A stretch of DNA of 63,597 nucleotides, filler included, from Pelomyxa schiedti (taxonomy: Eukaryota; Protista; Evosea), in NCBI GenBank assembly GCA_020536535.1. It is 14 parts of 14 records of this genome, joined end to end, with 100 filler letters (N's around TTAATTAATTAA, not from the genome) between each part and the next. Parts side by side here need not be neighbours in the genome. Positions count along the whole stretch, not along the records: positions 36,722 to 53,592 come from JAHLWZ010001138.1; 13 more parts are not named here. One strand, written 5' to 3'. Under the pieces are notes generated by a model. That model made no database searches, was not told the origin of the DNA, and worked only from the letters and a program-made list of their open reading frames with translations. Positions 36,622 to 53,692 of this stretch are shown here, piece by piece. The translations under genes and the position numbers were made by a program. Numbering within the stretch: position 1 is the stretch's first letter; every line of letters starts with the position of its first letter.

Positions 36622-36790
36622 NNNNNNNNNNNNNNNNNNNNNNNNNNNNNNNNNNNNNNNNNNNNTTAATTAATTAANNNNNNNNNNNNNNNNNNNNNNN
36701 NNNNNNNNNNNNNNNNNNNNNCCCCCCCCCCCCCCCCCCCCCCCCCGCGCGCGGGCCGTTGTGAACTAGCAATGTTGACTGCTCTCGTAG

Positions 36791-37271
36791 AGCCCCCCGT
36801 CATGACGGGAAAAGGACTTGACAGATAGACAACGCAGAAACGTACAACGTTTCAAAACTGAACTTCAATATTTGTAAGTTCGTTTTTTTTTTTTTCTTTC
36901 TTTTGTGTTGGTTAGTAAATACACTCACGTTTGGGATTCAGCAAACCAACAGTCATCGAAGTGAGCGGACTGACAATTGGGGCAGTGTTCTACGACGACG
37001 AAGGAATTGAGCTCAAGACCATCCAAATGGACACTTTCGATGTCGGCGATATGATCTACACTTACACGAGTAACGGATTCGTATATTGTCCTCCTGGGGT
37101 ACTTCTGTTTTGTTCTCTGCTTTTTTTTTTTGTTGTTGAATCATTTCACTAACATCCTGGCAGGTGGATTGCCCTGATGTTCCAGACAAATTCCTCGAGG
37201 AGGAGCCCGAAGAAGAACCCATCGATGTTGCTCCACCCGTCCCCGCCGACGAGAAAAAGGAGGAGCTGTGA
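36791..37271 (+). CDS. Candidate ER selenoprotein, SelM/Sep15-like thioredoxin fold (Sec TGA 36803-36805); first exon missing at the scaffold edge
   Basis: Exons 36791-36873, 36942-37098, 37164-37271 give SPPS(U)REKDLTDRQRRNVQRFKTELQYFKPTVIEVSGLTIGAVFYDDEGIELKTIQMDTFDVGDMIYTYTSNGFVYCPPGVDCP...KKEEL*; TGA aligns with the paralog Cys. Confidence 0.8.
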
Positions 37272-37372
37272 CACAACATGTAGTTGTGTCCTGAGGCTGA
37301 GACCTGTGTGCAGTGCCGCGATTCAGTGAGGTTTGCCAAAGTATATGAAGATGAGTGGGTGGGAGTTTTGGC

Positions 37373-37473
37373 CACAGCAATTGAGTGCAATGTGACGAGC
37401 TGCTGACATCAACACATTTCTGTGGTGACAACAGTACTCTGATGTAAAAGCGGTGCAAAGAACCTTGCTGGTG
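37373..37473 (+). promoter_or_regulatory. Putative type-II SECIS element
   Basis: G-TGAC (37392-37396) and TGAT (37440-37443) core, imperfect helix II, AA at 37411-37412, CACA-tttc-TGTG apical mini-stem, CACAGCAA/TTGCTGGTG lower stem. Confidence 0.7.
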
Positions 37474-37662
37474 CCTCTATGCGTTGCAGGCAACATAAGA
37501 ACATACACCGCGTGCACCCAATTACCAAACACCAATATTCCTTCATTCACTCTCCCATAGTCACTGAAAGTTACCTCACAATCACGCCACTGTACCCACA
37601 GGATAAGGAAAAAAGGAAAAAAGGAAAAAAGGAAAAAAGGAAAAAAACCCAATAGACAAAAC

Positions 37663-40532
37663 TTATGCTAGTTTGAATCTCTTTGGAAGTAACCTTCTCA
37701 ACAGAAATACGGAAACTATAAGACCAGCAAGGGCAAGGCAACCCAGTATGAGAAATACCCACTCTCTGACAGGATCGTCCACTAGGAATATTTGCATGTA
37801 CAGTCCACCCCAGCTATTGTAGTTGAATTAGGAGGTTTTAGGGGGTTATAATTATTATGCGGAATGAAATTAACTACTGCCGGGGAAAAAGAGTTGACTT
37901 ACTCTGCTTCTGCCCATGTTGGCTCTGATAAGTTAACAATTTTCCATTCTGAGGAGCCGGTGTCATACTCAAAAGCGGGGCTAATAGCATCATGATAGAA
38001 TACTGATGCTTGCATGCAACGGGGTCCAGTTGGGTCCCCCGCACATGTCCATCCCTGTGCGGTTGTGTGGGAATGTATTGTGGGATTGGGGGTAGAGTGG
38101 AGATAGCGACTTACATAGGGACACTGGCTCTGTTCAGTACAGTTTTGTCCGATCAGGGAAGCAGTTTGCCAGTAGAGAAGGTTGAATATGAAAGTTACTG
38201 GCAAGCTGATAAAGTAAGATGTGGCTGAGTAACCAAAAACGCCAACATAGTAGGATGGTGTTGCACTCCCGGATAGTGTTCCTGTCAAAGTTCTTAGTAT
38301 TATTCGAGTGTGCCGGAATAGCAATTACCGAGAAGGGATTGAATGAGCGGGCATTTCCAATCTACAGTGAGACATTGCCACAGTTGTGCAACCTAGTTTG
38401 CTGTTAAAATCTGCTCCTATATTGTTCTGGTACCAGTTCGCAATCAGCATTGATAGAATCAAGAAGAGCAGCAGGTGGCTCTGCCCCATTTGTGTTGTTC
38501 CAGGCTATTGTAAACAGTGCTCGTGATACACTCGTTGCTATGCTGCACAGTAGGCTGGAGTAAGCCGTCGTTGTATTTGTGGTGTTCGAGGTTGTGTTTG
38601 TTGTATAATTGGTGACTACAGAGATATCAGTGAGGTTGTAGAAATCACTCCTATCAAATTGGGAGTGATAGTAAGTAGTGGCGAAAGCGGAAGAGTGATC
38701 GGCCAGTATCACAGTGGGGAGTGCCGGGTTTTGTTGAAGGAAAGGAGTGGCAGGAGTTGGGGGAACTTGATTTCCAGTAGGTGAGTTGAGACCTACAGCT
38801 GTGAAAGTGTAGTTGTCCTAATGGGATCGGGTGAACCCCATAAAGGAGTTGTAGCACACGTACATTACTTTGGGAGGATAGTATGTTAATTATTCGATTA
38901 GTGTCATCTTGATTGTCTGTCTGATACAACCATATATTTGGTTTGTCTGATTATGTTAAATAATGCCGCACTCACATGGAGCGACACCTTGTGTTAGAGA
39001 CTGGCCTATCTGTCCAATATCTATAACCATTTTGATGTTGTCTAACTTAATTTTTGTGAACTCAGTGGATACAGCGAAGGGATCATTGCATTGGCCATAT
39101 ATTTCATTGTCATACTGTTGGCACTGCAATGCTTAAATTAAAAATGTGTGTCAAGAGGAAAAACCTCGAAGTTTTGCAAATCGTGAACAAGTTTCCTGGA
39201 CCCAAGGTATCCATAGGTCTCGCCATTAAAGATTGCGAAGACAATATCATATGGAAGATTCGACAGCTCAGCCTAAATGCATTACTCGGAGGTATGCATA
39301 ACGCAATGCACCTTGACTTGTTTCAATGCTAGCTCGGCGGACACAAGTGCTATAACGCCTGCGATATTACCCATCCCAGGGGCATGATTGTGGAACATAG
39401 ATGTACTATCAATGGTCGAAGTCTTGTGAAACTTTAGGTTGGTAGAAGTCGAAGATGGCATACAACTAGGATGATTGGTTTCGGTGCTTTCGAGGAGAGG
39501 GGTTCAAGTGTACTCCATATACTTTTTCCTCCGAGGGGAAGGCAAAGTCCTGTGCGATTTCAAGGGGAGAGACAAGTTACTGGACCGTACCTCTCCTCAG
39601 GCATGTGATAGTGTCATCAGCCCCGTACATGAAAGTGGAGATCCCTGCGCCCCACTTTGGGTATTTGTCATTATCCCTGTTATATTTCGCCACCTGGAAG
39701 GCTCAATAGGGGAAAAAAAGAGCTGCCATACACTACGTATAGACTCAGCACTAGAAGAGCTCAGAAACCACATTGGAAAATTGAAGCTCTGGAAAATTAA
39801 GCTGTCTCCCTGGAGCCAATGAGATAAGACAAATCTGGAAAGGGATACCAACGGATTCCACTCATATGAAGACCAAGTGTTCCATTTTGAATTAGGAACT
39901 GTTTCGTCGGAACTGCTGCCTTTAAAGAAACAAAGGTAAACGGAATAAACTTGATACTTTAAGTACCAGCAGGTGGAGGTGGGCCCTCGAGTACAATAAT
40001 ACCCGTAAGGTCACCTCTTTTTAGTGTATCTATTGTATCCCTACGGTAAGGAAATGAGAAAAAAAAAGAAGAACCGAAAAGAAAAAAGTGGCCAATACCG
40101 AAAAAACAAAGTAGAGTCTAGAACCACAATTCCATTCCCTCCATTTGCGAATCTATCCACATCTTCCTGCGATTCAACCAAAAATAGTTCCCCCGAGACC
40201 TGCCTCCTCCCCTCTGGTTTTTTTTTAAAAATTATATTTTTGTTCCGTCTTAAATCCCCTGCACCCAGACATGCAAAAAAAGAAAACCGAAACAACCCAT
40301 AATGAAAACAAAGGGGAGCAGGCTCACCGGTGGTGCAACCGTATTGCCCATCTTTGTCCATGATTAGCACGCAGGGGTCGCCATTCCACCCCGTGTATAT
40401 CAGGTCATGCACGTCCTCAGTCGTGGTGTCCTTGGTCCCAATGGCCCCCTCAACCACTGCTCCCATAATAGCCAGCATCACACCCACAACACCAACGGCA
40501 GTGCACACCGCCCGGTACGGCCACAGCACCAT
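37663..40532 (-). CDS. NCSTN: Nicastrin (gamma-secretase subunit), many introns
   Basis: Signal peptide; LIY...PCVLIMDKDGQYGC; WNPL-GDSLIFQSFNFPMWFL; QLPPTP; YYHSQFD; YHDAISPAFE; PTWAEA-xW...IFLV then a single TM helix and short basic tail. Confidence 0.9.
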
Positions 40533-40823
40533 CCCTCAAATTTGTGTGGCTCGTTACAATCAACTGGCCAAAACTGCGAAAGGTTGAACGAGATGCTGGG
40601 AGCTCGGCTCTATAAAGAGTCATAGAGTGGAGACTGAAGGATCTCCATTGGTCATCAGTTTTCCAGTGCTGGGAAAAGTTCCACGGTTCTCTGTGCCGGA
40701 AACCGATAAAAAGCCACGTCGACGCATCATGCACAACAACCACTTCCCCAATTCCATGGGAAAATTCCCTTTTTTACCTTGCGAGACACACGAACAATCA
40801 AAAGGCACAATCAGTGCAACGCA

Positions 40824-41488
40824 ATGGCAAATGTACTACGGGTTGTTGTCTGTGCTGTAGTGGTGATGGGGCTCTTGTGTTCAGAGGCGCAGGCGGATTT
40901 GGTGGACAAAATAGCCTACGGTGTTTTTAAGGTGCGCCAAGTAGTCTTTCTTTTGGGGCCACGCGAGGTTTTTGGTTTAACTTGGATTTTTTTGTATGCA
41001 GACTCCACCGCCATGCCGTATACATGACTTGAGTCCAAGACTGCTGAAAGCAGTGCAACGATTCGGCAGTGAGATTAAGTACTTGTATGAATGCCCCTTT
41101 TCCCTTTCTTCTCCACGTGATACTTATTGACTGACACATTCAAGCAAACCGACAATCATCGAGGTGAGCGGACTGACAGTTGCAGCAATGTTCTATGACG
41201 ACGAAGGAATTGAGCTCAAGACCATTCAAATGGACACATTTGATGTAGGTGACATGATCTACACTTACACTAGCCACGGATTCGTTTATTGTCCTCCTGG
41301 AGTGGTGTGCCCCCAGCCCATTTCATTACTGTTACTCGTGCATTGTAAGCCAACCTTCTGTTTTCCAAAAAAAAAAACAGGTGGACTGCCCTGAACCAAT
41401 CCACGTCAGTCCCCGTTGGAATGATCTACCAGAAGAAGCCAATGAACCGGCGGCGGAAGAGGCAACTGATGACAAGCACGAGCTATAA
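40824..41488 (+). CDS. Cys-containing paralog of the SelM/Sep15-like ER protein
   Basis: Four exons: signal peptide MANVLRVVVCAVVVMGLLCSEAQA, GVFKTPPPCRIHDL..., core near-identical to 36942-37098, C-terminal KHEL. Confidence 0.85.
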
Positions 41489-41661
41489 CACCCAAGATTT
41501 CGAAAAGAAACAGTTCCCTAAGCGAAGCTTCACTTAATCCACATCGAGAGCACTGTGAGAATTTATTTATTTTCAACTTTTCCTTGGTGGGGCTTTCGGG
41601 GTACAGAATTAAATTAATCTCAACGCGTACGCGTACCGGTTGGATAACGCACCACAGCGCG

Positions 41662-44600
41662 ATGTCATCTACAGCAGCAGCAGCCAACACACGACGCCAA
41701 AACAAAAACGCAGCGGATGGGAGTAGCTCGTCGGCTGGAAGAGGCGCGGGTGGCCACGCAGCGGGGGGGGTGGGCATGGAGATGGAGATGGAGATGTGGA
41801 CGTGGGGGTCCAACGGCAGCGGGGAGCTGGCCCGCTCCCTGTGCTTCACTGCATCATCATCATCATCGGGCGACACGGACACGGACAGCGCAGGAGCAGG
41901 GAGCGGGCCCCGGTCGTCGTCGTCGGCGGCGGCGGCGGAACAACTGGGGGGGTCAAGGACTGATGATGGTGGCTCCAAGGGCGATACTACACTGGTTCGT
42001 GGAAAATGTGTCTGTGTGCCTGTGTGCCTGTGTGCGTGTGCGTGTGCGTGTGCTTGTGTGTGTTGATAATTACTATTATTATTATTGACATACAGTATTG
42101 GATGTGCTGAAACATAACACACCCCCACATTAACATCCTCATCATCATCTGAATTGAACGCGTGCACTACCCCCACAAGAACATTTATATGTGTCCCGTT
42201 TGTGATGGGCACTTAGGGGACAAGGATTGCAAAGCCGGGTTACGTTAGCCTTGGGAATGGCGTGTTTGCGCAGTCAGTGTGCTGCGGGCAAGGTCACACT
42301 GTGGCTCTGGATACTGTGGGCCGAGTGTGGGCATGGGGTGCAAATGAATTTGGTCAGCTTGGGCTCGGCACAAGGGTTCTTTACCTTCGCCATGCATTTT
42401 TGTACAATAACTTTTGCTTAAAAGATTGCTCAGAGTGAACCTCAGCCTGTTGACTCTTTAGAGCAGACCGTGAAGATGATTGGGTGTGGGTTTCGTCACA
42501 CGGTAGCACTGACCCATACGGCTCAAGTATACACATGGGGTGAGGGTGCATATGGGAAACTTGGCTTGGGAACTTTTCCTACTTGCATGGTAAATATATT
42601 TTTTCCTCCTTTGACTTTCATTTCTCAATGTAACTACAACTACAGCCTTCTCCAATGTGCGTTGAAACACTGCCAAGAGTGAAGGAAATCTTTGTTGGTG
42701 CCCACCAGAACGCCTGTGTTGATGAAGATAATGGTGTCTACACATGGGGGTGGAATGGAAATGGTCAACTTGCTCACGGGTACCTTCCATTTATCCATTT
42801 TTGTCATTTGTCAATCTTTCAAGGTTCATGACAGATCCTCTCTCTGGCTTACCTACCCCCACTCGGATAGGAGACATTAACAAGCGGGTTGTGGACCACA
42901 TTGACAGAAGCATGGAAGGTATTCGTTTTCAGATCCGATCTATTAAATCAATTGCACTTACGAGTAATGAAGGAACTAAGATGGGAGAGCAATGGGATAG
43001 ATTTATCGCCATCTTCAAAGATGTAGTGGATGGCGAGACTGATAAACTAGCCAAAGAACTTCTAAGAGTCCATTTTCAACGGAGTGAAAACTATACTAAG
43101 AAAGAAGAACAAGTGAAGGTGTGCAATGCAGATTTCGATAGTTCTTTTTCTAACCTCATTAGATGATCAAAGATGTAGTTAGACTGGGAGCTCATGATGA
43201 ATTGTCCTCACGTCTCCTAGAACTCCTTGTTAAGACATTCCACGTTCACAAATACTATCAGAAAGTTCAGCACGAAAAAAGTGCTTCTGATGTACTGTTT
43301 ATTGCTCGTTTTGCTGTTCTTGATTGAATCAAAAGCTCATCTTCAGCCAAATTGCAATTGGAGAGAGACACATGGCAGCCATCACCCCAGAGGGAGAGCT
43401 GTATTCCTGGGGGTAATAACCATGATATCTACTTGGACTTAAAACCTCCTAGATGCAATCTGAGTGGGCAATTGGGAAGAGCAACAGAACACGCAGACTC
43501 GCCACTGCCTGCGCAAGTCGATTTACATGGCGTGACTTTTGTCAGTATATCTTGATTTGTCCCCTTCCCTCATTTAAATTGTAGGTATCATGTGGACTCG
43601 CTCACACAGCCGCTGTGCAAGGAGGTAGCGTTTTTTCTTGGGGACATAACGAGGCAAAAAGATTGGGCTATGAATCACCGGTAACCAATTTATTTTCTCT
43701 CTGTTTAGTAACTTGTGCAGGCCACACAACAAAAGACACCAAAAGCAGTTATTATACCTCTGCCTGCATCACAAAGCATCACGTCCGTTTCCTGTGGCGA
43801 ATTTCACACAATGGCTGTTACAAATACAGGAAGAGTTTGGGCCTGGTGACATCTTTTGGAAAGACTTCCAATTGGCTTAATTCTTTGTCTTCAGGGGCTA
43901 TAACAACTATGGACAACTTGGGAACCCCATCACTCCCGATGAAGTAATAAAACCTGTTGGTCACCCCCCAACAATGGTTGCCACTTTAGAGGATGTCCAA
44001 GGCATAATATGCGGAAATACTCATAACGTCGCTCTTCTGAGAAGCGCAAACCTCATATTTCAGTTATGCAGAGATAATAACCTCCAGGTACCAATTTTCC
44101 TTATGGTAACATCGAACTTATCAATATAGATGGTTCAAACAGTTTCGCAGGCTGTTGGGGCAGGGAGGAGGGACTCGACAGGGAAATCTCCCCTTCACCA
44201 CGCTGTGATATATGGTAATCTGGAAATTGCACAGTACCTGGTATGCCACGAAAATCTAGATGCTGCGGATAACCAAGGTGCAACTGCTTTGCATTGCAGT
44301 ATCGAGTCTCGTACTATGCCTTGCACCAAGTAGTTTCGCCTCTAGAAATGGTCTGAAATAATCTCACCTTTTACAAGACTTCTTGTCCAATCAGGATGTG
44401 CACTCAATATAGCAACAACTGTTCATAGTGACACGCCGTTGCATCTTGCAGCAAAGGCCCACTACTTCGATGTTGTACAGTTTTTAGTTATGGCAGGCGC
44501 GGCACCCAATCTTTCCGACTCTGAAGGGAAAACACCTCTGCAGTACTTGACCAGTGCTGAGTGTGCAAGTGTAAACTCTTTGATCGAAAGGTGGTTCTGT

Positions 44601-46048
44601 GCCCTTCTTTTCCTTTCTTAAAGTGTTCATAGTGCTGATATTGTTATCATATGTGCTCCTGCTGAGCAAACGTTCAGCAGCAATTTAGCAACAGTTGGTT
44701 AAGTAGCTTGTCATCTCTACTTACTTTTTAAAGGCTCTTCGAAACTACCGTTTCAAGGTGTGGGCTGACGACACTCCTCCTGGCTCAGATTCAGATCCTT
44801 CTTCAATTTCTTCTTCTGCAGTGGCACGAAGAATTACACGTGCCCGAGTGGTAATTTGGGTTGTATCCAATACTTCAGTTCTTTCTGAAAGATGCCGGCG
44901 GCACCTCCAAACTGCCACACAATTGTCCAAGCTCTTATTTCCCATCTGGTTTCACTATATAACCCATCTCCCACCTGATGTGGAACACCTGATTTTCAGG
45001 ACGCAGCTTGTCAACTTTAGTGGATCTGTATGTCCCTACTTGTATTACGCAAAAAAATTACCCAATGGCCTTTAGATTACCTTTAAAGAGGCACTAGCCA
45101 AACTTGTTGAAGGAATCCAAAATGCATTGGAAGGCCGAACAACAGTGAAAGTCGATACGGATGCCGAACCTACTCTTTCTCCTGAGGAGTTACAGCTAGA
45201 AACTTCCAAAATGGAAACTCTGATGTCAGGTTACTTACTGAGTGCCACTTCACACTCTCTCGGCTCAACACAAATCAGAAATTTCCTCCAAACCGTACAT
45301 TTTTATGTGCTACCATTGGTCAGACAAAACCAAAGTGCAATCACTCATGGATAGGCTTTCACAATACCATTTCTTATGCTACCCTGGTTCCAACAAAGTA
45401 CATGACGTAGCGGTGCGGAAAATCCACCCCCAACATCGTTATCCTAACTCTCTCATCTTTTCCCTGAACAGAGAATCAGTAGTGTAATTATTGGAAGCAG
45501 CATATTTGTGCTATGCCTTTCCCGCCGCTCCGTCAACAATCCCGACATCAGAAATCAACTCGCGCTGGCCGAAAACAAGAACATCATCATGGTACCTCCC
45601 TCTCCCAACATATCCCACTCCACTGAAACCAAACCAAATTCCGCATTCCGCATTTTCCGCATTCCACCTTATGCATTCCACCATTCCCGACCAGAACAAT
45701 TCCCATTCCACCCTCACCTGCATGTAGTTCCCGGTTCATTTTCAGAAGAAAATACCGGTTGATCCGGGCATGCAATACACCCTAGCGCGAGCACCCAGTT
45801 TCGTGTACAACAGGCAGTCGCCCGACTCACTGGGCACCCTCGTCGCACAGCTATCTGACGCCATCACACTCAGCACCAGGGTCCAGACATCCGAGGCCAG
45901 CGTGGTCACTCTCGGCGATGACATCACTGCAACGACAAACAAGGTGGCCGAGGCGAAACAAACACTGGCCAGGCTCAGGTCAATCCTCGCGGAGATGGAG
46001 AGAACCAAGAAGAAGAACGCAAAGGCACATGGCGTGGTGAATGACTGA
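41662..46048 (+). CDS. RCC1 repeats + ankyrin repeats + two TIR-like domains + coiled coil (TirA-like architecture)
   Basis: WTWGSNGSGELA, CGFRHTVAL, VYTWGEGAYGKLG; GKSPLHHAV, DTPLHLAA, GKTPL; TIR1 ~44632-45030 and TIR2 ~45295-45860 (YIFMCYHWSD...IFVLCLSRRSV). Confidence 0.8.
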
Positions 46049-46239
46049 CAAGAAGGAAGGGAACCCCAACCAGAAATGTTGAAAGAGAGCAACATAAGTG
46101 TAGCAAGAGAAGAAATTTTCCGGAAATGTTTGTTGGGAGCGTGGGAAGAGGAAGAGTGAGTGTTGTGTATGTGGTGAAGAGAAAGAAAAAGAGATAGGAG
46201 TGCACGAGCCAAAATGTTTCACAATTGACAACCTATCTT

Positions 46240-47162
46240 TTATAAGTAGTGTGGGTTCCTGGTCTTGGGGATGAGGAGCATTGTCCTTTGGAAACAGCGG
46301 ACCTTCTTGCCACCAATTGTGAGAACAATTTTGCCCCTGTTGGAAACATTAGTATATGGATTGCGGAGTTCAGAAGAGTGGTTTCCGTACTTGGAAGCAT
46401 AGCCGTAGCGGCCAGAAGTGAAAGCGGTGGGTCGGCAAGTCCAACCAGAGCCGCAAACTGAGAGTGACACGGGCCTTGATTTGGCAACCCATCTCTTGAT
46501 CTCAACAGCCAACTATTTGGTGTTTAAGTAACTGGATTTAGCATATTATCCGCTTGAGTATACAGGTTAAATCGATATGAACTTCGGAAAAGAAAGCAAA
46601 AAAAGGAGGGTGTGGGTCTCACCTTTCTCAATTTGGGAGCGGGGGCCTTGGCCTTGGTGGCCTTCTTCACAACTTTCTTCTCTCCCTTGACAGTCTTCTT
46701 CACCACCTTCTTGGGTGCGGGCTTCTTCTCACCAGCCTTTTTGGGTGCTGGTTTCTTCTCGCCTGCCTTCTTTGGTGCAGCCTTCTTCTCACCGACTTTC
46801 TTGGCCGGTGCCTTCTTCTCAGCTGGCTTCTTCTCACCGGCCTTCTTTGGGGCAGCCGCCTTCTTCTCACCCGCCTTCTTTGGCGCCGCAGCCTTCTTCT
46901 CGGCTGGCTTCTTCTCACCCTCCTTCTTGGGAGCCACTTTCTTCTCACCCTCCTTCTTTGGCGCCGCTGCAGCCTTTTGCTTTTTCTCAGCAGCTGGCTT
47001 CTTCTCAGCGGCTGGTTTTTTTTCTGCTGCTGGCTTCCTCTCGGCAGCTGGTTTCTTCGCAGCGGCGGGTTTTTTTTCAGCAGCGGGGGCTGCGGCTGCG
47101 GGCTTTTTCTCGGCCGCTGGTTTTTCAGCAGCTGGCTTGGTTGTTGTTGGTTTAGCCGACAT
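46240..47162 (-). CDS. Histone-H1-like Ala/Lys/Pro-rich protein with a ~90-aa non-H1 C-terminal domain
   Basis: Exon 47162-46623 (PAAEKK, APKKAGEKK repeats), intron 46622-46513, exon 46512-46240 in frame. Confidence 0.8.
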
Positions 47163-47401
47163 GGTGGATCTGTCTAGTCACAAAAAAACGCGTGCTGGTG
47201 TCGCACTTCCGGTACCGCGTCGCGCAGCGATGAACGAGAAAAAAAAGATCTTTCCTTTCTGTTGTTGCTTCTCGATTTTTGTCGTCTCTACGTAATTTCT
47301 GTCAATTGCATCACTCCCACTTCTTTCCCGTTTCTATTCTATCGTTCAATTCCCCTTCCGTGAAACCGAACCAGTACTGGTATTGCAATTTCGCGCCTTT
47401 G

Positions 47402-48645
47402 ATGGTGCGGTGCGCAACACCTCCCTCCCTGCCCCCCTTCTATACCCTAATCCTCTTCCCCACTATATGTTCCCAAAATTCTCACCCTCGATTCCAGGGT
47501 AAAGTTACACGCAGCAGAACAAAGTACCACGCCCCGGCCGCCAGGCTCCCCCAAGACCACGACGGCTACGACTCCTCGGGCAACGACGACAACGACGATG
47601 ATCCGGCGCGGGCCCAGGCGGACTACATCTCAGTGGTGGGGGGGCGGCTGGCGGGCCCCAGGCACCCGGCTCCTGTCGCGGAGCCAGGGCGGCTGCCGCC
47701 CCCGCCCGCGCCCCCGGGGTCGCTGTACGGCGGGGACGGCGGGCCCCTCGACGCGGACGCGTTCGCCAAGCGGCACGGCGGGGGCGAGGCCGGCCTCATG
47801 GCCTTCATCAACGAGAGGGAGCAGCTGCTCAAGAGGCAGCAGAAGCTCACAAAGAGAATGTCCGCTGCCGCCGCAAAGTCAAAGCCAAGCAGGGCACGCG
47901 GCGTGACGTCATCATCATCGTCATCGCAACTGCAGGAGGGTGGTGGCGATGATGAATCGAGGAGCGGAGGGAGGCATTCTAATAAGCAGGCTAGGAAGGC
48001 TGCTCGTAACGAACGCAGGCTCAACTTTTTGGCAAGTGAGTATTCCTATGCCTAGTGTTAAGTGACTGCGAGAATTCTAAGCTTTTATCTGTCTTGGACC
48101 TGAAATACTGGATTACCACTAAAAGCCATTTGAACAGAGTTGGAGGCATCAAAGGGCGTGCAGCAAGAAGAGGAAAGTGCAGAGGAAGATGAAGAAAGCG
48201 AAGATGTTAGTGATGATGATGAACAAAACACAGTCACAACAACCACACAAACCCCTGCTGTTGCACGGCCGGGGAAGGCAAAGAAACCCACCTCACAGCG
48301 AGGAGCAAAAGCGAACACAAAATCAAGCAAACTCAAACTCAAACCCAAGTCCAAGTTCAGCTCAAAGAAGCAGAACACAATAGCGTATGCAACAGTTGCT
48401 TTTTTTCAAATACCGAATTTTAAATTAATGCAAATTGATAATTGATTTAAATATTGATAATTTAAATGTAGAAAGAGGGAAGTAAAAGCAGTCAAGAGTG
48501 TTATGGCCTCTGCAAGCTTTCAATCTGACCCGATTCAGACAGCTCAGGTTTCGTTAACCTTAAAAACTATTTGACTGCCTAACCTCCCAACTAGGAACAT
48601 ATTATGCAATTTTTATCTGAGCAAGGAGCCGGAAGAAGGCATTGA
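47402..48645 (+). CDS. SLX9: SLX9/FAM207A-like ribosome biogenesis factor
   Basis: ATG-only first coding exon then GKVTRSRTKYH; C-terminal REVKAVKSVMASASFQSDPIQTAQEHI fits the SLX9 terminal motif. Confidence 0.7.
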
Positions 48646-48673
48646 GAAACTGTGGTTTTTTTGTGAACTAAAG

Positions 48674-49723
48674 TCAAGTATTTTGTTCCGGGACTTGTTC
48701 TGGCACCTTTTCTGGTGCTTTTTCTCGTTCTTGTTCTTGTTGTTGGTGATTTTTCAGTGCTTCAAGGAAGTCTTCTAGAGCACCAATGATTGAAGGTACC
48801 CAGAGGTTTTCAGTCAGAGAGTGCTTTTTGCAAAAATCAACAGACATCTTTTCAAGGTCATCTTCCTTTTGGAAGGGTTAGAGGGAATTTTGGATTTTAA
48901 AGAAAAAGGTTACAGGAGTAGGACGCAAGTAGGCAATCAGATTTTCAGTCTCAATCTCTATGGCTACCCCTAGAAGTTGTTAGATATTCCCAAGTGGAAG
49001 TGGGGAGGTACCCTTGTCAAAGTCGTAGTCTTCATCTTCCTCATTCTCTCCGTCTGCCGTTTCGGAATGTTGTGTTGGTAGTGAGTTGGAAGCCAATGGT
49101 TGTTCTGGTTGCTTGCCGGTTGGGACAGAGTCAGGGAGCTGTGTTGTGCTTGAAGCGGGTTGCGCTTGAGTGGATGTAGTATCCGGTGTCTGAGTTTGTG
49201 GTGTTGTAGCATCCACAGAACATTCTGTAGTTGGACTCTTTGCTGAAGTAGTAAGTTGTGAAGAAGCAGCAGCAGTAGTCGAAGTGCCATCCGCATCCAC
49301 ATTCAATCCCGAAGCTTTATTCTCAGCAGCCGCGGATTCCGCACTGGAACCCAGAACCGGAACCGTCGGCACTTGCGCAGTCGTCTCCAACGGCGTGGGT
49401 TCGGCAGTGTGGTCAGGTTCCCTCTTGGGAGTGAGGCCCGGCACGTGCCGCACGGGGGCCCTGCCCCTCCCTCCCCCCCTCGCCCTCGTGGCCCCTCCCC
49501 TCACGCCATCCCCCCCGCGTCCTCTGGCCGCCTCTCCCACTCCCACTCCCCCTCCTCCTCTGCGGTCTCTTGCTGGGCCGCCCCCGTACGATCCGCCGGG
49601 GAGATACACACTCTGGCCCGGGGGTATGACCCCGGGCGTGTAGATCGACGTGGCGCGCCCGCGCGACGACGGCGGGTATCGACCCCTGGGGTTGTACCCC
49701 GACGGCTGCGGGGGCATCATCAA
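48674..49723 (-). CDS. Hypothetical protein with RGG/Pro-rich N-terminus and small C-terminal domain
   Basis: 247-aa ORF plus two downstream exons ending VPEQNT*. Confidence 0.6.
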
Positions 49724-49847
49724 GCTTGATTTTTCTTCTCAAAAACTGAGAATGGGGGATGAGTACGACATAGTGGTGTACGAAGACTACCCAGGTGTGC
49801 AATTTCTAGCCAACTCGTACCGGCGCTCAGTATTATAATAATGCCCA

Positions 49848-52786
49848 CTACCCACAAACCAAGGTGCTCCGCCACCAGCCACAACAACAACAACCAACAC
49901 GGAATACAGAAATACCGAAAACGAGAAACGGAATCCCTCCAAGTTCATCTTCGTGAGCCATCTTTTTAATTTTTAGGAACAGTTAAAATTGTGTCACTGG
50001 GAGTTAAATACACGTGTTAGTTCCGCTATGACTTCTTCCATTCGTTCTCGGTCATTGGAGTCAATCACCCATATGCAAGCTGTTGTATTTTGGTAGTCTG
50101 TGCGCTGAGATTAGTGGGAATCCGGCACTAGAACTACTTACAATGCCTCCACAGGGGTCTAATTTTATCCTCTGCATTTTTTTTTTAATTACAGGTACTT
50201 TTAATTTTTTTTAACATGCCTCCCCCGCAATCCTGGATAGGAATGTAAGTGGTTGACACATAACTAAAATATGGAAAGAAACCCAAGAAATAATCTTTAT
50301 GTTCTTGGAATACTGTGATGTCTCAATATCTACAGTTCATATGAAATTTCATGGAAAGAAAAGTAAGTGCGAACTGAATCCAATTGTAGGTATCGTGGTC
50401 TCTGGTATAATCTTCAGTTTGTAAAGAATCGTAGTTTTCCCTGAAGTCATTAAGGAGAACAGATAATCATAAAACTGTGGTGCCTGCTGCATCTAGTCCA
50501 TGCATAAGTATCCGCATCTCAGGATACGAGGAAATCATCTTAGATGTTGATGAACCCCAACCTATCTTGGCAAGAAAAGATCCAAAGAAGCCTGTATTCT
50601 CAGGCTGGGGGACTGTCTTTACCTTTTTTACAAGTTCCATTGCTTTACTGTGTACACTTAGAAATCGTCAACACAAAAAGAATTGACTTCGATCCAAAGG
50701 CATTCTTCCGAAGTCTCTTGGTTTCCCGGAGAGCAGTGAAAAAGTGCTGTTTCCAATTCTCAGATTTGCTTAATACACTGTGGTGAGGAGGTTTCTTTCC
50801 AACAAATAAGACACACACCATATCTGAATGGAGCCTATAGATTTTTGAATCCGGGGGTCCCATTTTTCTTTGAGATATAAGTCCTGCCATATCCTATTGT
50901 CCGATGCTACAAAGAACATAGCACGGCATGTTTGCGAGACTGAGCAAAGTGCTTCATAATCAAGCAATCCAATGATCATACTTAAGGAAATAATCCAATG
51001 AGTGGTGGAATTTTAAAGTGACTGGGAGGTCTATTTTACGCACAGTAAGACATCAATGGGACATGTACTAAAATTTCCTTTTTTAGGTCAGAGGAGAGTA
51101 AAAAAAAAAAGAATAAAATCTACCAAGGGATATGAGAGAGGATATCCCTCCACTTAAAACCGGATTGGTACAAGGAATATCCTCCTCAACAACACATGCA
51201 CTAGAAAGCCAGCCACATGCAATGGCCAATATATTTTTATTTGCCAGTAATGGTACAGCCGTAGGAGTGTTGCGGTCGACTTGATCTCCAACACCTTAAG
51301 GCAAGTAAGGTCAACGGAGGAATCATGAAAAGAAATGTTACCAAGCTGTCCTTGATCATTTGAACCCCAGGCAAAAAGAATCCTGGTCTCACTCAGAGCA
51401 AGTGAATGTGCACTACCGTATGCACCACCTGCAGCAATTTGGCTGATGCGCTCAGATTTTAGAGATAAAACAGGTTTTGGAAGATTGCTATTGATATTAT
51501 CCCCGGTTCCAAGTTGTCCCTTCCTTGGAGGAAAGTGAAGAACACCCTTAGGAGGTAAAATCCACACTTATTTTCGCCAAAGGCAAACAACGATCCTGTG
51601 TCTGTTGCAACGAGGGAGTGTTTATCACCACACGCAACTCTGGTTACTCTCATTCCGTTGAAGTAAGATACTACTTTTGGAGAGGAGTGAGAACACTATG
51701 GAAGAGTCAGTTGGGGAAAGATGGTTGTGATAACCTCATCACCGTGTCCTAGTGAGGCCATCAAAATCATTGTCAAAATACAACAGTTGTAAGTTTTGTT
51801 TTATACCGAGTTGGCCTTGGATTCCAGAACCCCAGCTGTATAGCTGCCCGTTATCCGCAACTGCTAGTGAGTGCTTCCCTCCTGCCGCCACGAACGAAAT
51901 GTGAATTTCAGGTTCGAAGTTGCAGGGGACAAATTCGAATCTTTGTCCCATTAATTGTAAAGCCAAAAGTCAGAAAATACAGTTAACCTTTCTTTGGAAT
52001 CACCAACACCAAGCTGGCCCATCTCATTTTGCCCAATGGCGCGCAGTGCACCAGTGTTCGAAACAACTAAAGTGTGGAGTGCACCAGCAGCTATTTGTAC
52101 TGGTATTTGATCTGCGGAAAAGTAAGTTCTTGAAAGTTGCGGAAATATAGAAACCAATGTAAAATTGAGCAGGTTGCAACAATGCAACGCGGGCAATACG
52201 AGAGGGATTACTAAATGTTGGAGAGTCAAGGTCCCATCTACATGCACACTGATCACTTGAAGACATTGCCCAGGTACTTAGAGCCCCACACGAAACACTT
52301 GGTGTTGGGTGAGGATTACAAAATTTTTTTTTGTTTGTTTGTTAGATTACGGAAAGAAGGAAACAAAAGGGGGCACACTGGGTACCTTGTAGTTTTAGCA
52401 GAACCGAAAACCAGCCACTCAGGGGCACCCGTGGCATACAATCCCCCCCACGTGAATACCTGCCCATCGATCACTGCCGCCATGTGCCTATCATATCATG
52501 ATTTGTTAATTACAGCGGCACTTTCCCCCGCACCCATAACAGAAAAACCACAGGGGGGGGGGGGGGGGGGGGGTGGCCACGCGCATACCCGCCGCCGCAG
52601 GATATCCCCGTGATCCTGCGTGTTGCCCCAGAGATGCCATCCACGACCACCGGCTCGCTCCGCCCCGCCCCCCGTGGATGACGACGAGCCCAGCTGCCCG
52701 TGGCTCCCGCACCCCCACGTGTACACGTTGCTCGTGCATGCCCTACTAGTAGAACTACTCGCACGCGCAGGTCCTTGCTGGCTCAT
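49848..52786 (-). CDS. RCC1 repeats + F-box + ARF-like GTPase fusion (ARF apparently truncated; 3' end uncertain)
   Basis: VYTWGCGSHGQLG and further RCC1 units; IIGLLDYEALCSVSQTCR...[59 protein letters not shown]. Confidence 0.8.
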
Positions 52787-52922
52787 GGAAAACCCGCTCT
52801 CATTTTCCCACCCCAATCGCATTCCCCTGGACGCAATGGCGGAATAAAAAAAAACTAGGCGATAACGGAAATGGCTGCGTTCGTCGTCGAGCAATTTTCT
52901 CCGAATCAAAAACTTGGAAACC

Positions 52923-53300
52923 ATGTTTTCGTGGTTCAAGTCACTCAGGGGGCCACGTGTGGGACCCGATGAGTGGTTCGTTGCCGCGCTTGCTGGCGAC
53001 ACCGACGCACTGCGGCGTATGCTGGCCGGCGACCCCGACCTGCTAAACTCTGTAACCGACGAACGACAACGAGTGGTGTGAATGCGTGACAACTCTTTTT
53101 TTTTGTTCACACGATAGTAATCGTTTTGCGCGGGCACACACACACGCAGACAGCGTTGCATGCAGCCACGTGGACAGGGAAACCACAGTGCGTTGAGTTC
53201 CTGTTGTCACAGAATGTCGATGTCAATTCTCAGGTTTAAGGGCCCTTACTTTGAGGCGCTCACTCACAAACTTGTATCTCTCACTTCACAGACTGTGTGT
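52923..53300 (+). CDS. Ankyrin-repeat protein, 3'-partial
   Basis: WFVAALAGDTDALRRML...TALHAATWTGKPQCVEFLLSQNVDVNSQ; divergent from the RCC1 gene, ~135 bp apart. Confidence 0.75.
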
Positions 53301-53365
53301 AATACTATCCTGATCATGCTTTCACTTCCTTTCCTCTAAAAACTAATCCAGGGGGAGCCTGTACG

Positions 53366-53591
53366 TTTTTATTGCGTTTATTCATCAATTTCTGACTTGC
53401 TTCAATTTCTCTCTCTTTGCTTCTCTCTGTGCAATGTTTAGGATGTGTGTAACTTCTCCCAACCCTTTTTCATTGCGTTTATTCATCAATTTCTGACTTG
53501 CCTCAATTTCTCTCTCTTTGCTTCTCTCTGTGGAATGTTTAGGATGTGTGTAACTGCTCCCAACCCTTTTTCATTGCGTTTATTCATCAAT
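53366..53591. repeat. 101-bp tandem repeat (>2 units) running into the scaffold end
   Basis: ATTGCGTTTATTCATCAATT at 53371, 53472, 53573. Confidence 0.9.
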
Positions 53592-53692
53592 TNNNNNNNN
53601 NNNNNNNNNNNNNNNNNNNNNNNNNNNNNNNNNNNNTTAATTAATTAANNNNNNNNNNNNNNNNNNNNNNNNNNNNNNNNNNNNNNNNNNNN

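Follow-up and report, generated by a model that had tools for sequence, protein, structure and literature searches.

Introduction

Pelomyxa schiedti is an anaerobic, free-living archamoeba (genome paper PMC8887013), and the use of selenocysteine (Sec) has a patchy distribution in protists and Amoebozoa (PMC4561486). A search of the literature found no paper on Pelomyxa selenoproteins. The question raised by the locus described here is whether a hairpin encoded on the plus strand at 37373–37473 serves as the SECIS element of a selenoprotein mRNA, as a first-pass annotation of the sequence had proposed. Positions refer to the window, the whole stretch of 63,597 nucleotides (filler included) drawn from assembly GCA_020536535.1, in which 36722–53592 is the 16,871-base piece JAHLWZ010001138.1. 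On this piece NCBI lists nicastrin (minus strand), a 152-aa hypothetical protein, RCC1-repeat proteins and a few others; no NCBI gene is called within its first 941 bases, where the hairpin and the gene to which it would belong are found.

Other features of the piece were recorded in passing. A run of 25 C's opens it (36722–36746) and a G run lies within it (52553–52576), both probably sequencing or assembly artefacts, and a tandem repeat with a 101-nt unit, 96% identical, extends from 53366 to 53592, reaching the contig end. An annotated reading frame at 46524–47162 on the minus strand is rich in Lys, Ala and Pro, contains periodic repeats of 15–30 nt and resembles a linker histone tail, with no Pfam family assigned. 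A tRNA scan of the piece returned no tRNA, and none of the sequence was marked as resembling human DNA.

An unannotated, expressed gene upstream of the hairpin

There is strong evidence for a spliced and expressed plus-strand gene, missing from the NCBI annotation, which ends at the TGA at 37268–37270. Its exon model was built with a tandem paralog as guide, and was set against RNA contigs from four single-cell runs of one 2023 study, unstranded and mapped to 36750–40750. Exon a (36791–36873) encodes SPPS-U-REKDLTDRQRRNVQRFKTELQY, with two further bases belonging to a split codon. Its acceptor at 36789–36790 is shown by the loose end of an RNA contig; the 27 extra letters with which that contig enters at 36789, together with AG, read ..DKIAYGVFK, the peptide with which the paralog's exon 1 ends. 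Intron a/b (36874–36941) is taken from the paralog model, and exon b (36942–37098), recognised by its identity to exon b of the paralog, comprises 52 whole codons. Intron b/c (37099–37163) is a GT..AG intron of 65 nt seen as a joint in an RNA contig, and exon c (37164–37270) ends ..KKEEL before the TGA stop. The exon preceding exon a falls off JAHLWZ010001138.1, being missing because of the C run at the contig start; by analogy with the paralog it presumably carries a signal peptide. The KEEL terminus of the product is likely to be an ER-retention signal.

The 3'UTR runs from 37271 to at least ~37600 (~330 nt) and is covered by RNA contigs of three runs, spanning 37163–37592, 37229–37600 and 37276–37550. 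The gene converges on nicastrin, annotated on the minus strand with its stop codon TAA at 37663–37665, and a (GGAAAAAA)n microsatellite at 37605–37652 separates the two 3' ends. All of the RNA contigs from the Sec gene terminate just short of this tract, which could reflect either a poly(A) site or internal oligo-dT priming. Since the contigs span the 3'UTR, the hairpin is transcribed, a statement to be read with the contigs being unstranded and the convergent nicastrin stop lying ~60 nt beyond. Polyadenylation upstream of 37390, which had been named beforehand as the finding that would speak against the hairpin, is not what these unstranded contigs indicate, as they reach 37592–37600. The nicastrin gene itself (37663–40532, minus strand) has at least 14 introns in the RNA contigs, many of just 39–47 nt.

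The RNA contig of one run, X1, departs from the genome within 36994–37253. It has the paralog's bases at 37038 and 37050 and a C>T change at 37208, all three substitutions being at third codon positions, and an extra A after 37253 that would shift the last codons and abolish KEEL; over 37254–37592 (339 nt, all of the UTR part of that contig) it is identical to the genome. Gene conversion along a tract of an allele could explain these differences, as could a chimaeric assembly.

The in-frame UGA and the tandem Cys paralog

The candidate Sec codon is the TGA at 36803–36805, which aligns with a TGC (Cys) codon at 41014–41016 of the paralog. Similarity is retained on both sides of this position (SPPS-U-RE.. 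in the Sec gene, TPPP-C-RI.. in the paralog), and no other break of the frame is found. The paralog mentioned in the first-pass annotation is real and lies on the same piece: it occupies 40824–41488 on the plus strand in four exons (40824–40931, 41002–41084, 41145–41301 and 41381–41488), encodes a signal peptide and ends ..DDKHEL-TAA. It corresponds to NCBI KAH3732657.1, hypothetical protein Pelo_16507, save for a 3-nt difference in the choice of a donor. In the NCBI model the donor at 41296–41310 lies 3 nt further downstream (..PPGVVDCP..), and the junction that RNA supports in the Sec copy reads ..PPG/VDCP.. (the slash marks the junction); the NCBI splice model of the paralog may be off by one codon.

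The two copies are related by a direct repeat of 88% identity (36940–37100 versus 41143–41303), within which exon b and exon b of the paralog (41145–41301) are 88% identical in nucleotides and 90% in protein. Past the TGA, exon b differs from its counterpart by 14 synonymous and five non-synonymous changes (pS 0.42, dN/dS 0.069); for the summed exons dN/dS is 0.185. By this pattern of substitution, the sequence downstream of the TGA is under strong purifying selection. A copy terminating at the TGA would not retain such a ratio, so the UGA is very probably read through and decoded as Sec, the gene being very probably a selenoprotein gene. The suggestion that a selenoprotein gene lies upstream of the hairpin has thus become a very good candidate, on the strength of the UGA/Cys alignment, the low dN/dS past the UGA, splicing and expression.

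Two other readings of the frame were set aside. A TGA at 36819 had been considered as an in-frame codon and was dropped, the paralog alignment having fixed both the frame and the exon a/b junction. An alternative genetic code, in which UGA would specify Cys or Trp, was rejected: ordinary stops on JAHLWZ010001138.1 include the TGA right after KEEL, the TAA after KHEL and the nicastrin stop, and reassignment is unlikely because TGA serves as a normal stop after KEEL.

Sequence and fold of the hairpin

If the gene is a selenoprotein gene, a SECIS is expected in its ~330-nt 3'UTR. Every motif segment that the first reading had listed is present there, letter for letter. The whole candidate element, with its proposed helix 1, spans 37373–37473. 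The 5' side of the core is the G-UGA-C of GTGAC at 37392–37396, in which UGAC (37393–37396) fits UGAN, and the 3' side is the UGAU of TGAT at 37440–37443, which fits KGAW; UGAN/KGAW is the published consensus of the SECIS core (PMC3753652), so that this part of the proposal is borne out. Both UGAC and UGAU adjoin helix 2 directly and could form tandem G.A/A.G pairs. The core begins 122 nt past the TGA at 37268–37270, close to the ~120 nt first estimated, which places it in the 3'UTR of a transcript carrying an in-frame UGA.

In the minimum free energy (MFE) fold, helix 2 is formed by GAGCTGCTGACATC at 37397–37410 and GTGACAACAGTACTC at 37425–37439, and is followed by AA (37411–37412), a mini-stem of CACA (37413–37416) with TGTG (37421–37424) and an apical loop TTTC (37417–37420). 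From the core upwards the order is GAG/CUC, a bulged C, UGCUG/CAGUA, a 3x3 internal loop, UC/GA, AA, CACA/UGUG and the loop UUUC. Helix 2 therefore contains ten pairs over strands of 14 and 15 nt, interrupted by one bulged C and one 3x3 internal loop, which agrees with its earlier description as an imperfect upper helix. The same upper-hairpin helices are found in the local MFE fold and in that of the whole UTR, and in the whole-UTR ensemble the pair probabilities of helix 2 are 0.91–0.97. Those of the mini-stem are 0.73–0.96, 0.73 being that of its top pair, and the type II form with an apical mini-stem is upheld. The spacing from core to AA is 14 nt, as had been counted, and lies beyond the classical 10–13 window.

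Two elements of the proposed structure are less well supported. The AA is present, but in the free MFE its first A pairs with U37426, and unpairing of both As costs 0.6 kcal/mol; with the AA forced unpaired the hairpin has an energy of -11.7 kcal/mol. The lower pairing of CAGCAA (37375–37380) with TTGCTG (37465–37470), proposed as helix 1, appears when the 101-nt segment is folded alone, where the pairings CAGCAAUU and UGCA are formed, but both have a probability of ~0 in the whole-UTR ensemble. Folded alone with RNAfold, 37373–37473 gives -24.1 kcal/mol and z +0.47 against shuffles, and the local fold is thus not unusually stable. The whole 3'UTR (37271–37604), at -108.9 kcal/mol and z -2.7, is more structured than its shuffles, with a long-range pairing of the G/U-rich 37303–37370 with the C/A-rich 37540–37600 that is itself rich in G.U pairs. 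A MITE-like inverted repeat around the hairpin was also considered and has no support at the DNA level.

Frequency of comparable hairpins

The frequency with which such a hairpin arises by chance was gauged with a SECIS-like filter, the limits of which were chosen after the candidate was known. The filter called for a UGAN/KGAW core in which UGA and GA stand on either side of a forced first pair; the 5' strand had to measure 9–14 nt and pair downstream only, the AA to be unpaired and the 3' strand to be compact, with at least seven pairs. The hairpin at 37392–37443 is the sole match in the 3'UTR, and ranks first of 13–15 matches on both strands of the 16.9-kb contig (33.7 kb), at -11.7 kcal/mol versus -7.5 kcal/mol for the next. 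An equally good match was obtained in 113 of 3000 dinucleotide shuffles of the 3'UTR (3.8%). Under much looser limits the rank falls to 9th of 48 or 27th of 125, and with the classical spacing of 10–13 nt the filter does not recover the hairpin. Taken together, the hairpin exceeds chance modestly.

Scanning the 412 nt past the stop of the Cys paralog with the filter yielded no SECIS-like structure, in line with the earlier remark that no equivalent follows that copy. Within 37271–37660, when any apical dinucleotide or an RGA core was allowed, no other compact UGA..GA structure was found, the alternative UGA..GA or RGA..GA structures being branched and spanning 88–112 nt.

Covariance models and searches for relatives

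The first-pass annotation had warned that default searches could miss the hairpin, and the Rfam covariance models do miss it: at E<=10 the SECIS models, whose sensitivity for protist SECIS may be limited, gave no match, whether run on 16.9 kb, 390 nt or 116 nt.

Sequence searches for relatives of the protein took the exons of the Sec gene singly. Word searches with exon b and P0001 found no relative besides the paralog, and an exhaustive HMMER search of 1.84 billion representative proteins with an exon b profile likewise recovered the paralog alone. A metagenome scan produced 491 pattern matches, none of which was confirmed. Searches of Pfam (with P0001 and the exons) and of PDB sequences at E<=10 gave no match, and none to Sep15/SelM. 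Single-sequence AlphaFold models are of too low confidence (pLDDT 44.6 and 56.9) to judge a thioredoxin-like fold with Sec between its first strand and first helix, and Foldseek returned no matches for them. In a language-model feature search the paralog lay nearest to the Sep15/SelM clusters, the top look-alikes all belonging to PF08806 (0.86, 191/256 features). Kinship of the protein with Sep15/SelM (PF08806), as suggested by this model-based search, is a lead only.

The use of the hairpin as a lineage-specific model for finding further selenoproteins, as had been advocated, is premature: no orthologs were found in which conservation or covariation could be assessed.

Interpretation of the hairpin

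We consider it probable, on the gene context and the shape, that the hairpin at 37392–37443 with its flanks is a working SECIS of a P. schiedti selenoprotein mRNA. This reading is favoured because the gene needs a SECIS, because the hairpin is the sole SECIS-shaped structure in the UTR and because chance would supply a look-alike just a few percent of the time. The evidence from the hairpin itself is moderate; what speaks against the assignment is that helix 2 is irregular and that the covariance models fail to recognise the hairpin. Under this interpretation the gene would encode a small protein with one Sec in the context ..KSPPSU.., whose tandem duplicate has Cys at that position. The tandem G.A/A.G pairs of UGAC/UGAU would form a kink-turn to which a SECIS-binding protein would bind, the AA bulge below the CACA/UGUG mini-stem would complete the type II SECIS, and the resulting complex would bring Sec-tRNA to the UGA, which lies 454 nt earlier in the mRNA.

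The alternative that fares best accepts the selenoprotein gene and supposes that the working SECIS is some other structure of unconventional form, within the UTR or past it, the hairpin being a chance look-alike. In its favour are the blindness of the covariance models to the hairpin, the irregular helix 2, the chance match expected in about 4–8% of comparable sequence, and the z of -2.7 for the whole UTR, with 37303–37370 pairing with 37540–37600. Yet 37271–37660 offers no other compact UGA..GA structure, only the branched alternatives of 88–112 nt, and Rfam detects no other SECIS in the UTR, so that we regard this explanation as unlikely.

Less probable still is that the TGA is a plain stop, whether as a nonsense allele, through an error of assembly or because the gene is a young pseudogene, with no SECIS present and the motif arising by chance. 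A single change converts TGC to TGA, the assembly was made from amplified single cells, the gene is unannotated and truncated by the contig edge, and one RNA contig has the extra A after 37253 that would shift the last codons. Against this, the 14 synonymous and five non-synonymous differences past the TGA would not be kept by a copy ending there, the frame is open to the KEEL end of a gene that is spliced and expressed in the runs of the 2023 study, and no RNA-contig difference is reported at the TGA, though the extent of the contig there is not listed; moreover, the best SECIS-like structure of the contig sits in exactly this UTR.

Equally improbable is a role unrelated to Sec, with the hairpin forming part of a larger structured 3'UTR or of a sense–antisense overlap with the nicastrin transcript: the whole-UTR z of -2.7, the nicastrin stop at 37663–37665 with an A-rich repeat between the genes, and the unstranded contigs are compatible with it, but it leaves the UGA/Cys pair and the need for a SECIS unexplained, and the long-range pairing is G.U-rich rather than an inverted repeat at the DNA level.

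Under the SECIS interpretation, the Sec/Cys tandem pair would add an anaerobic archamoeba to the lineages that use Sec, and the hairpin would be a second amoebozoan SECIS type besides that of Dictyostelium. The gene also shows how genome annotation loses selenoprotein genes, none having been called in the first 941 bases of the contig. The impact on the field would be modest unless further Pelomyxa SECIS elements confirm a lineage-specific form. A bolder proposal, which we hold to be possible though doubtful, is that the gene founds a selenoprotein family known to date from Pelomyxa alone, distinct from Sep15/SelM, with a SECIS variant whose longer, interrupted helix 2 is missed by the models. 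It would imply that Sec decoding still works in an anaerobic archamoeba and that more selenoproteins are hidden there by SECIS forms peculiar to the lineage.

Comparison with known systems

A number of parallels can be drawn with SECIS elements described elsewhere. In Dictyostelium, the amoebozoan that has been studied, every element is of type II; UGUA precedes the core, a U-U mismatch follows it, and the bulge holds AAA (PMC2375036). Like the type II elements of Dictyostelium discoideum, the Pelomyxa structure is a 3'UTR hairpin whose UGA..GA core could give tandem G.A pairs; a pyrimidine mismatch follows directly after the core (C.U in Pelomyxa, U.U in Dictyostelium), adenines proposed to be unpaired lie in a bulge below the mini-stem, and the host is again amoebozoan. 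Unlike those elements, the Pelomyxa hairpin has AAUG rather than UGUA before the core and AA rather than AAA, and it is set apart by its 14-nt spacing, by the bulge and 3x3 loop of helix 2 and by having been missed by the Rfam models.

The G directly before the UGA core had led to the element being called a non-canonical GUGA form, which overstates the case: this position is outside the consensus core, and GUGA is no new feature because the elements of Ostreococcus have, as a rule, a G just ahead of the core (PMC2375036). As the likeness is of one nucleotide and Ostreococcus is an unrelated lineage, it is uninformative on descent. The type II form, the pyrimidine mismatch after the G.A pairs and the G before the core are thus all precedented (PMC2375036).

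The protein, for its part, recalls Sep15/SelM (PF08806, including the single-Sec Fep15) in being small, in having a signal peptide (seen in the paralog), in the placement of its Sec or Cys shortly past the first of the predicted strands and in the existence of both Sec and Cys forms; its KDEL-like end is shared with SelM. In contrast to that family, it has no partner cysteine in a CxxU or CxU arrangement, and neither Pfam nor the PDB sequences gave a match to it at E<=10.
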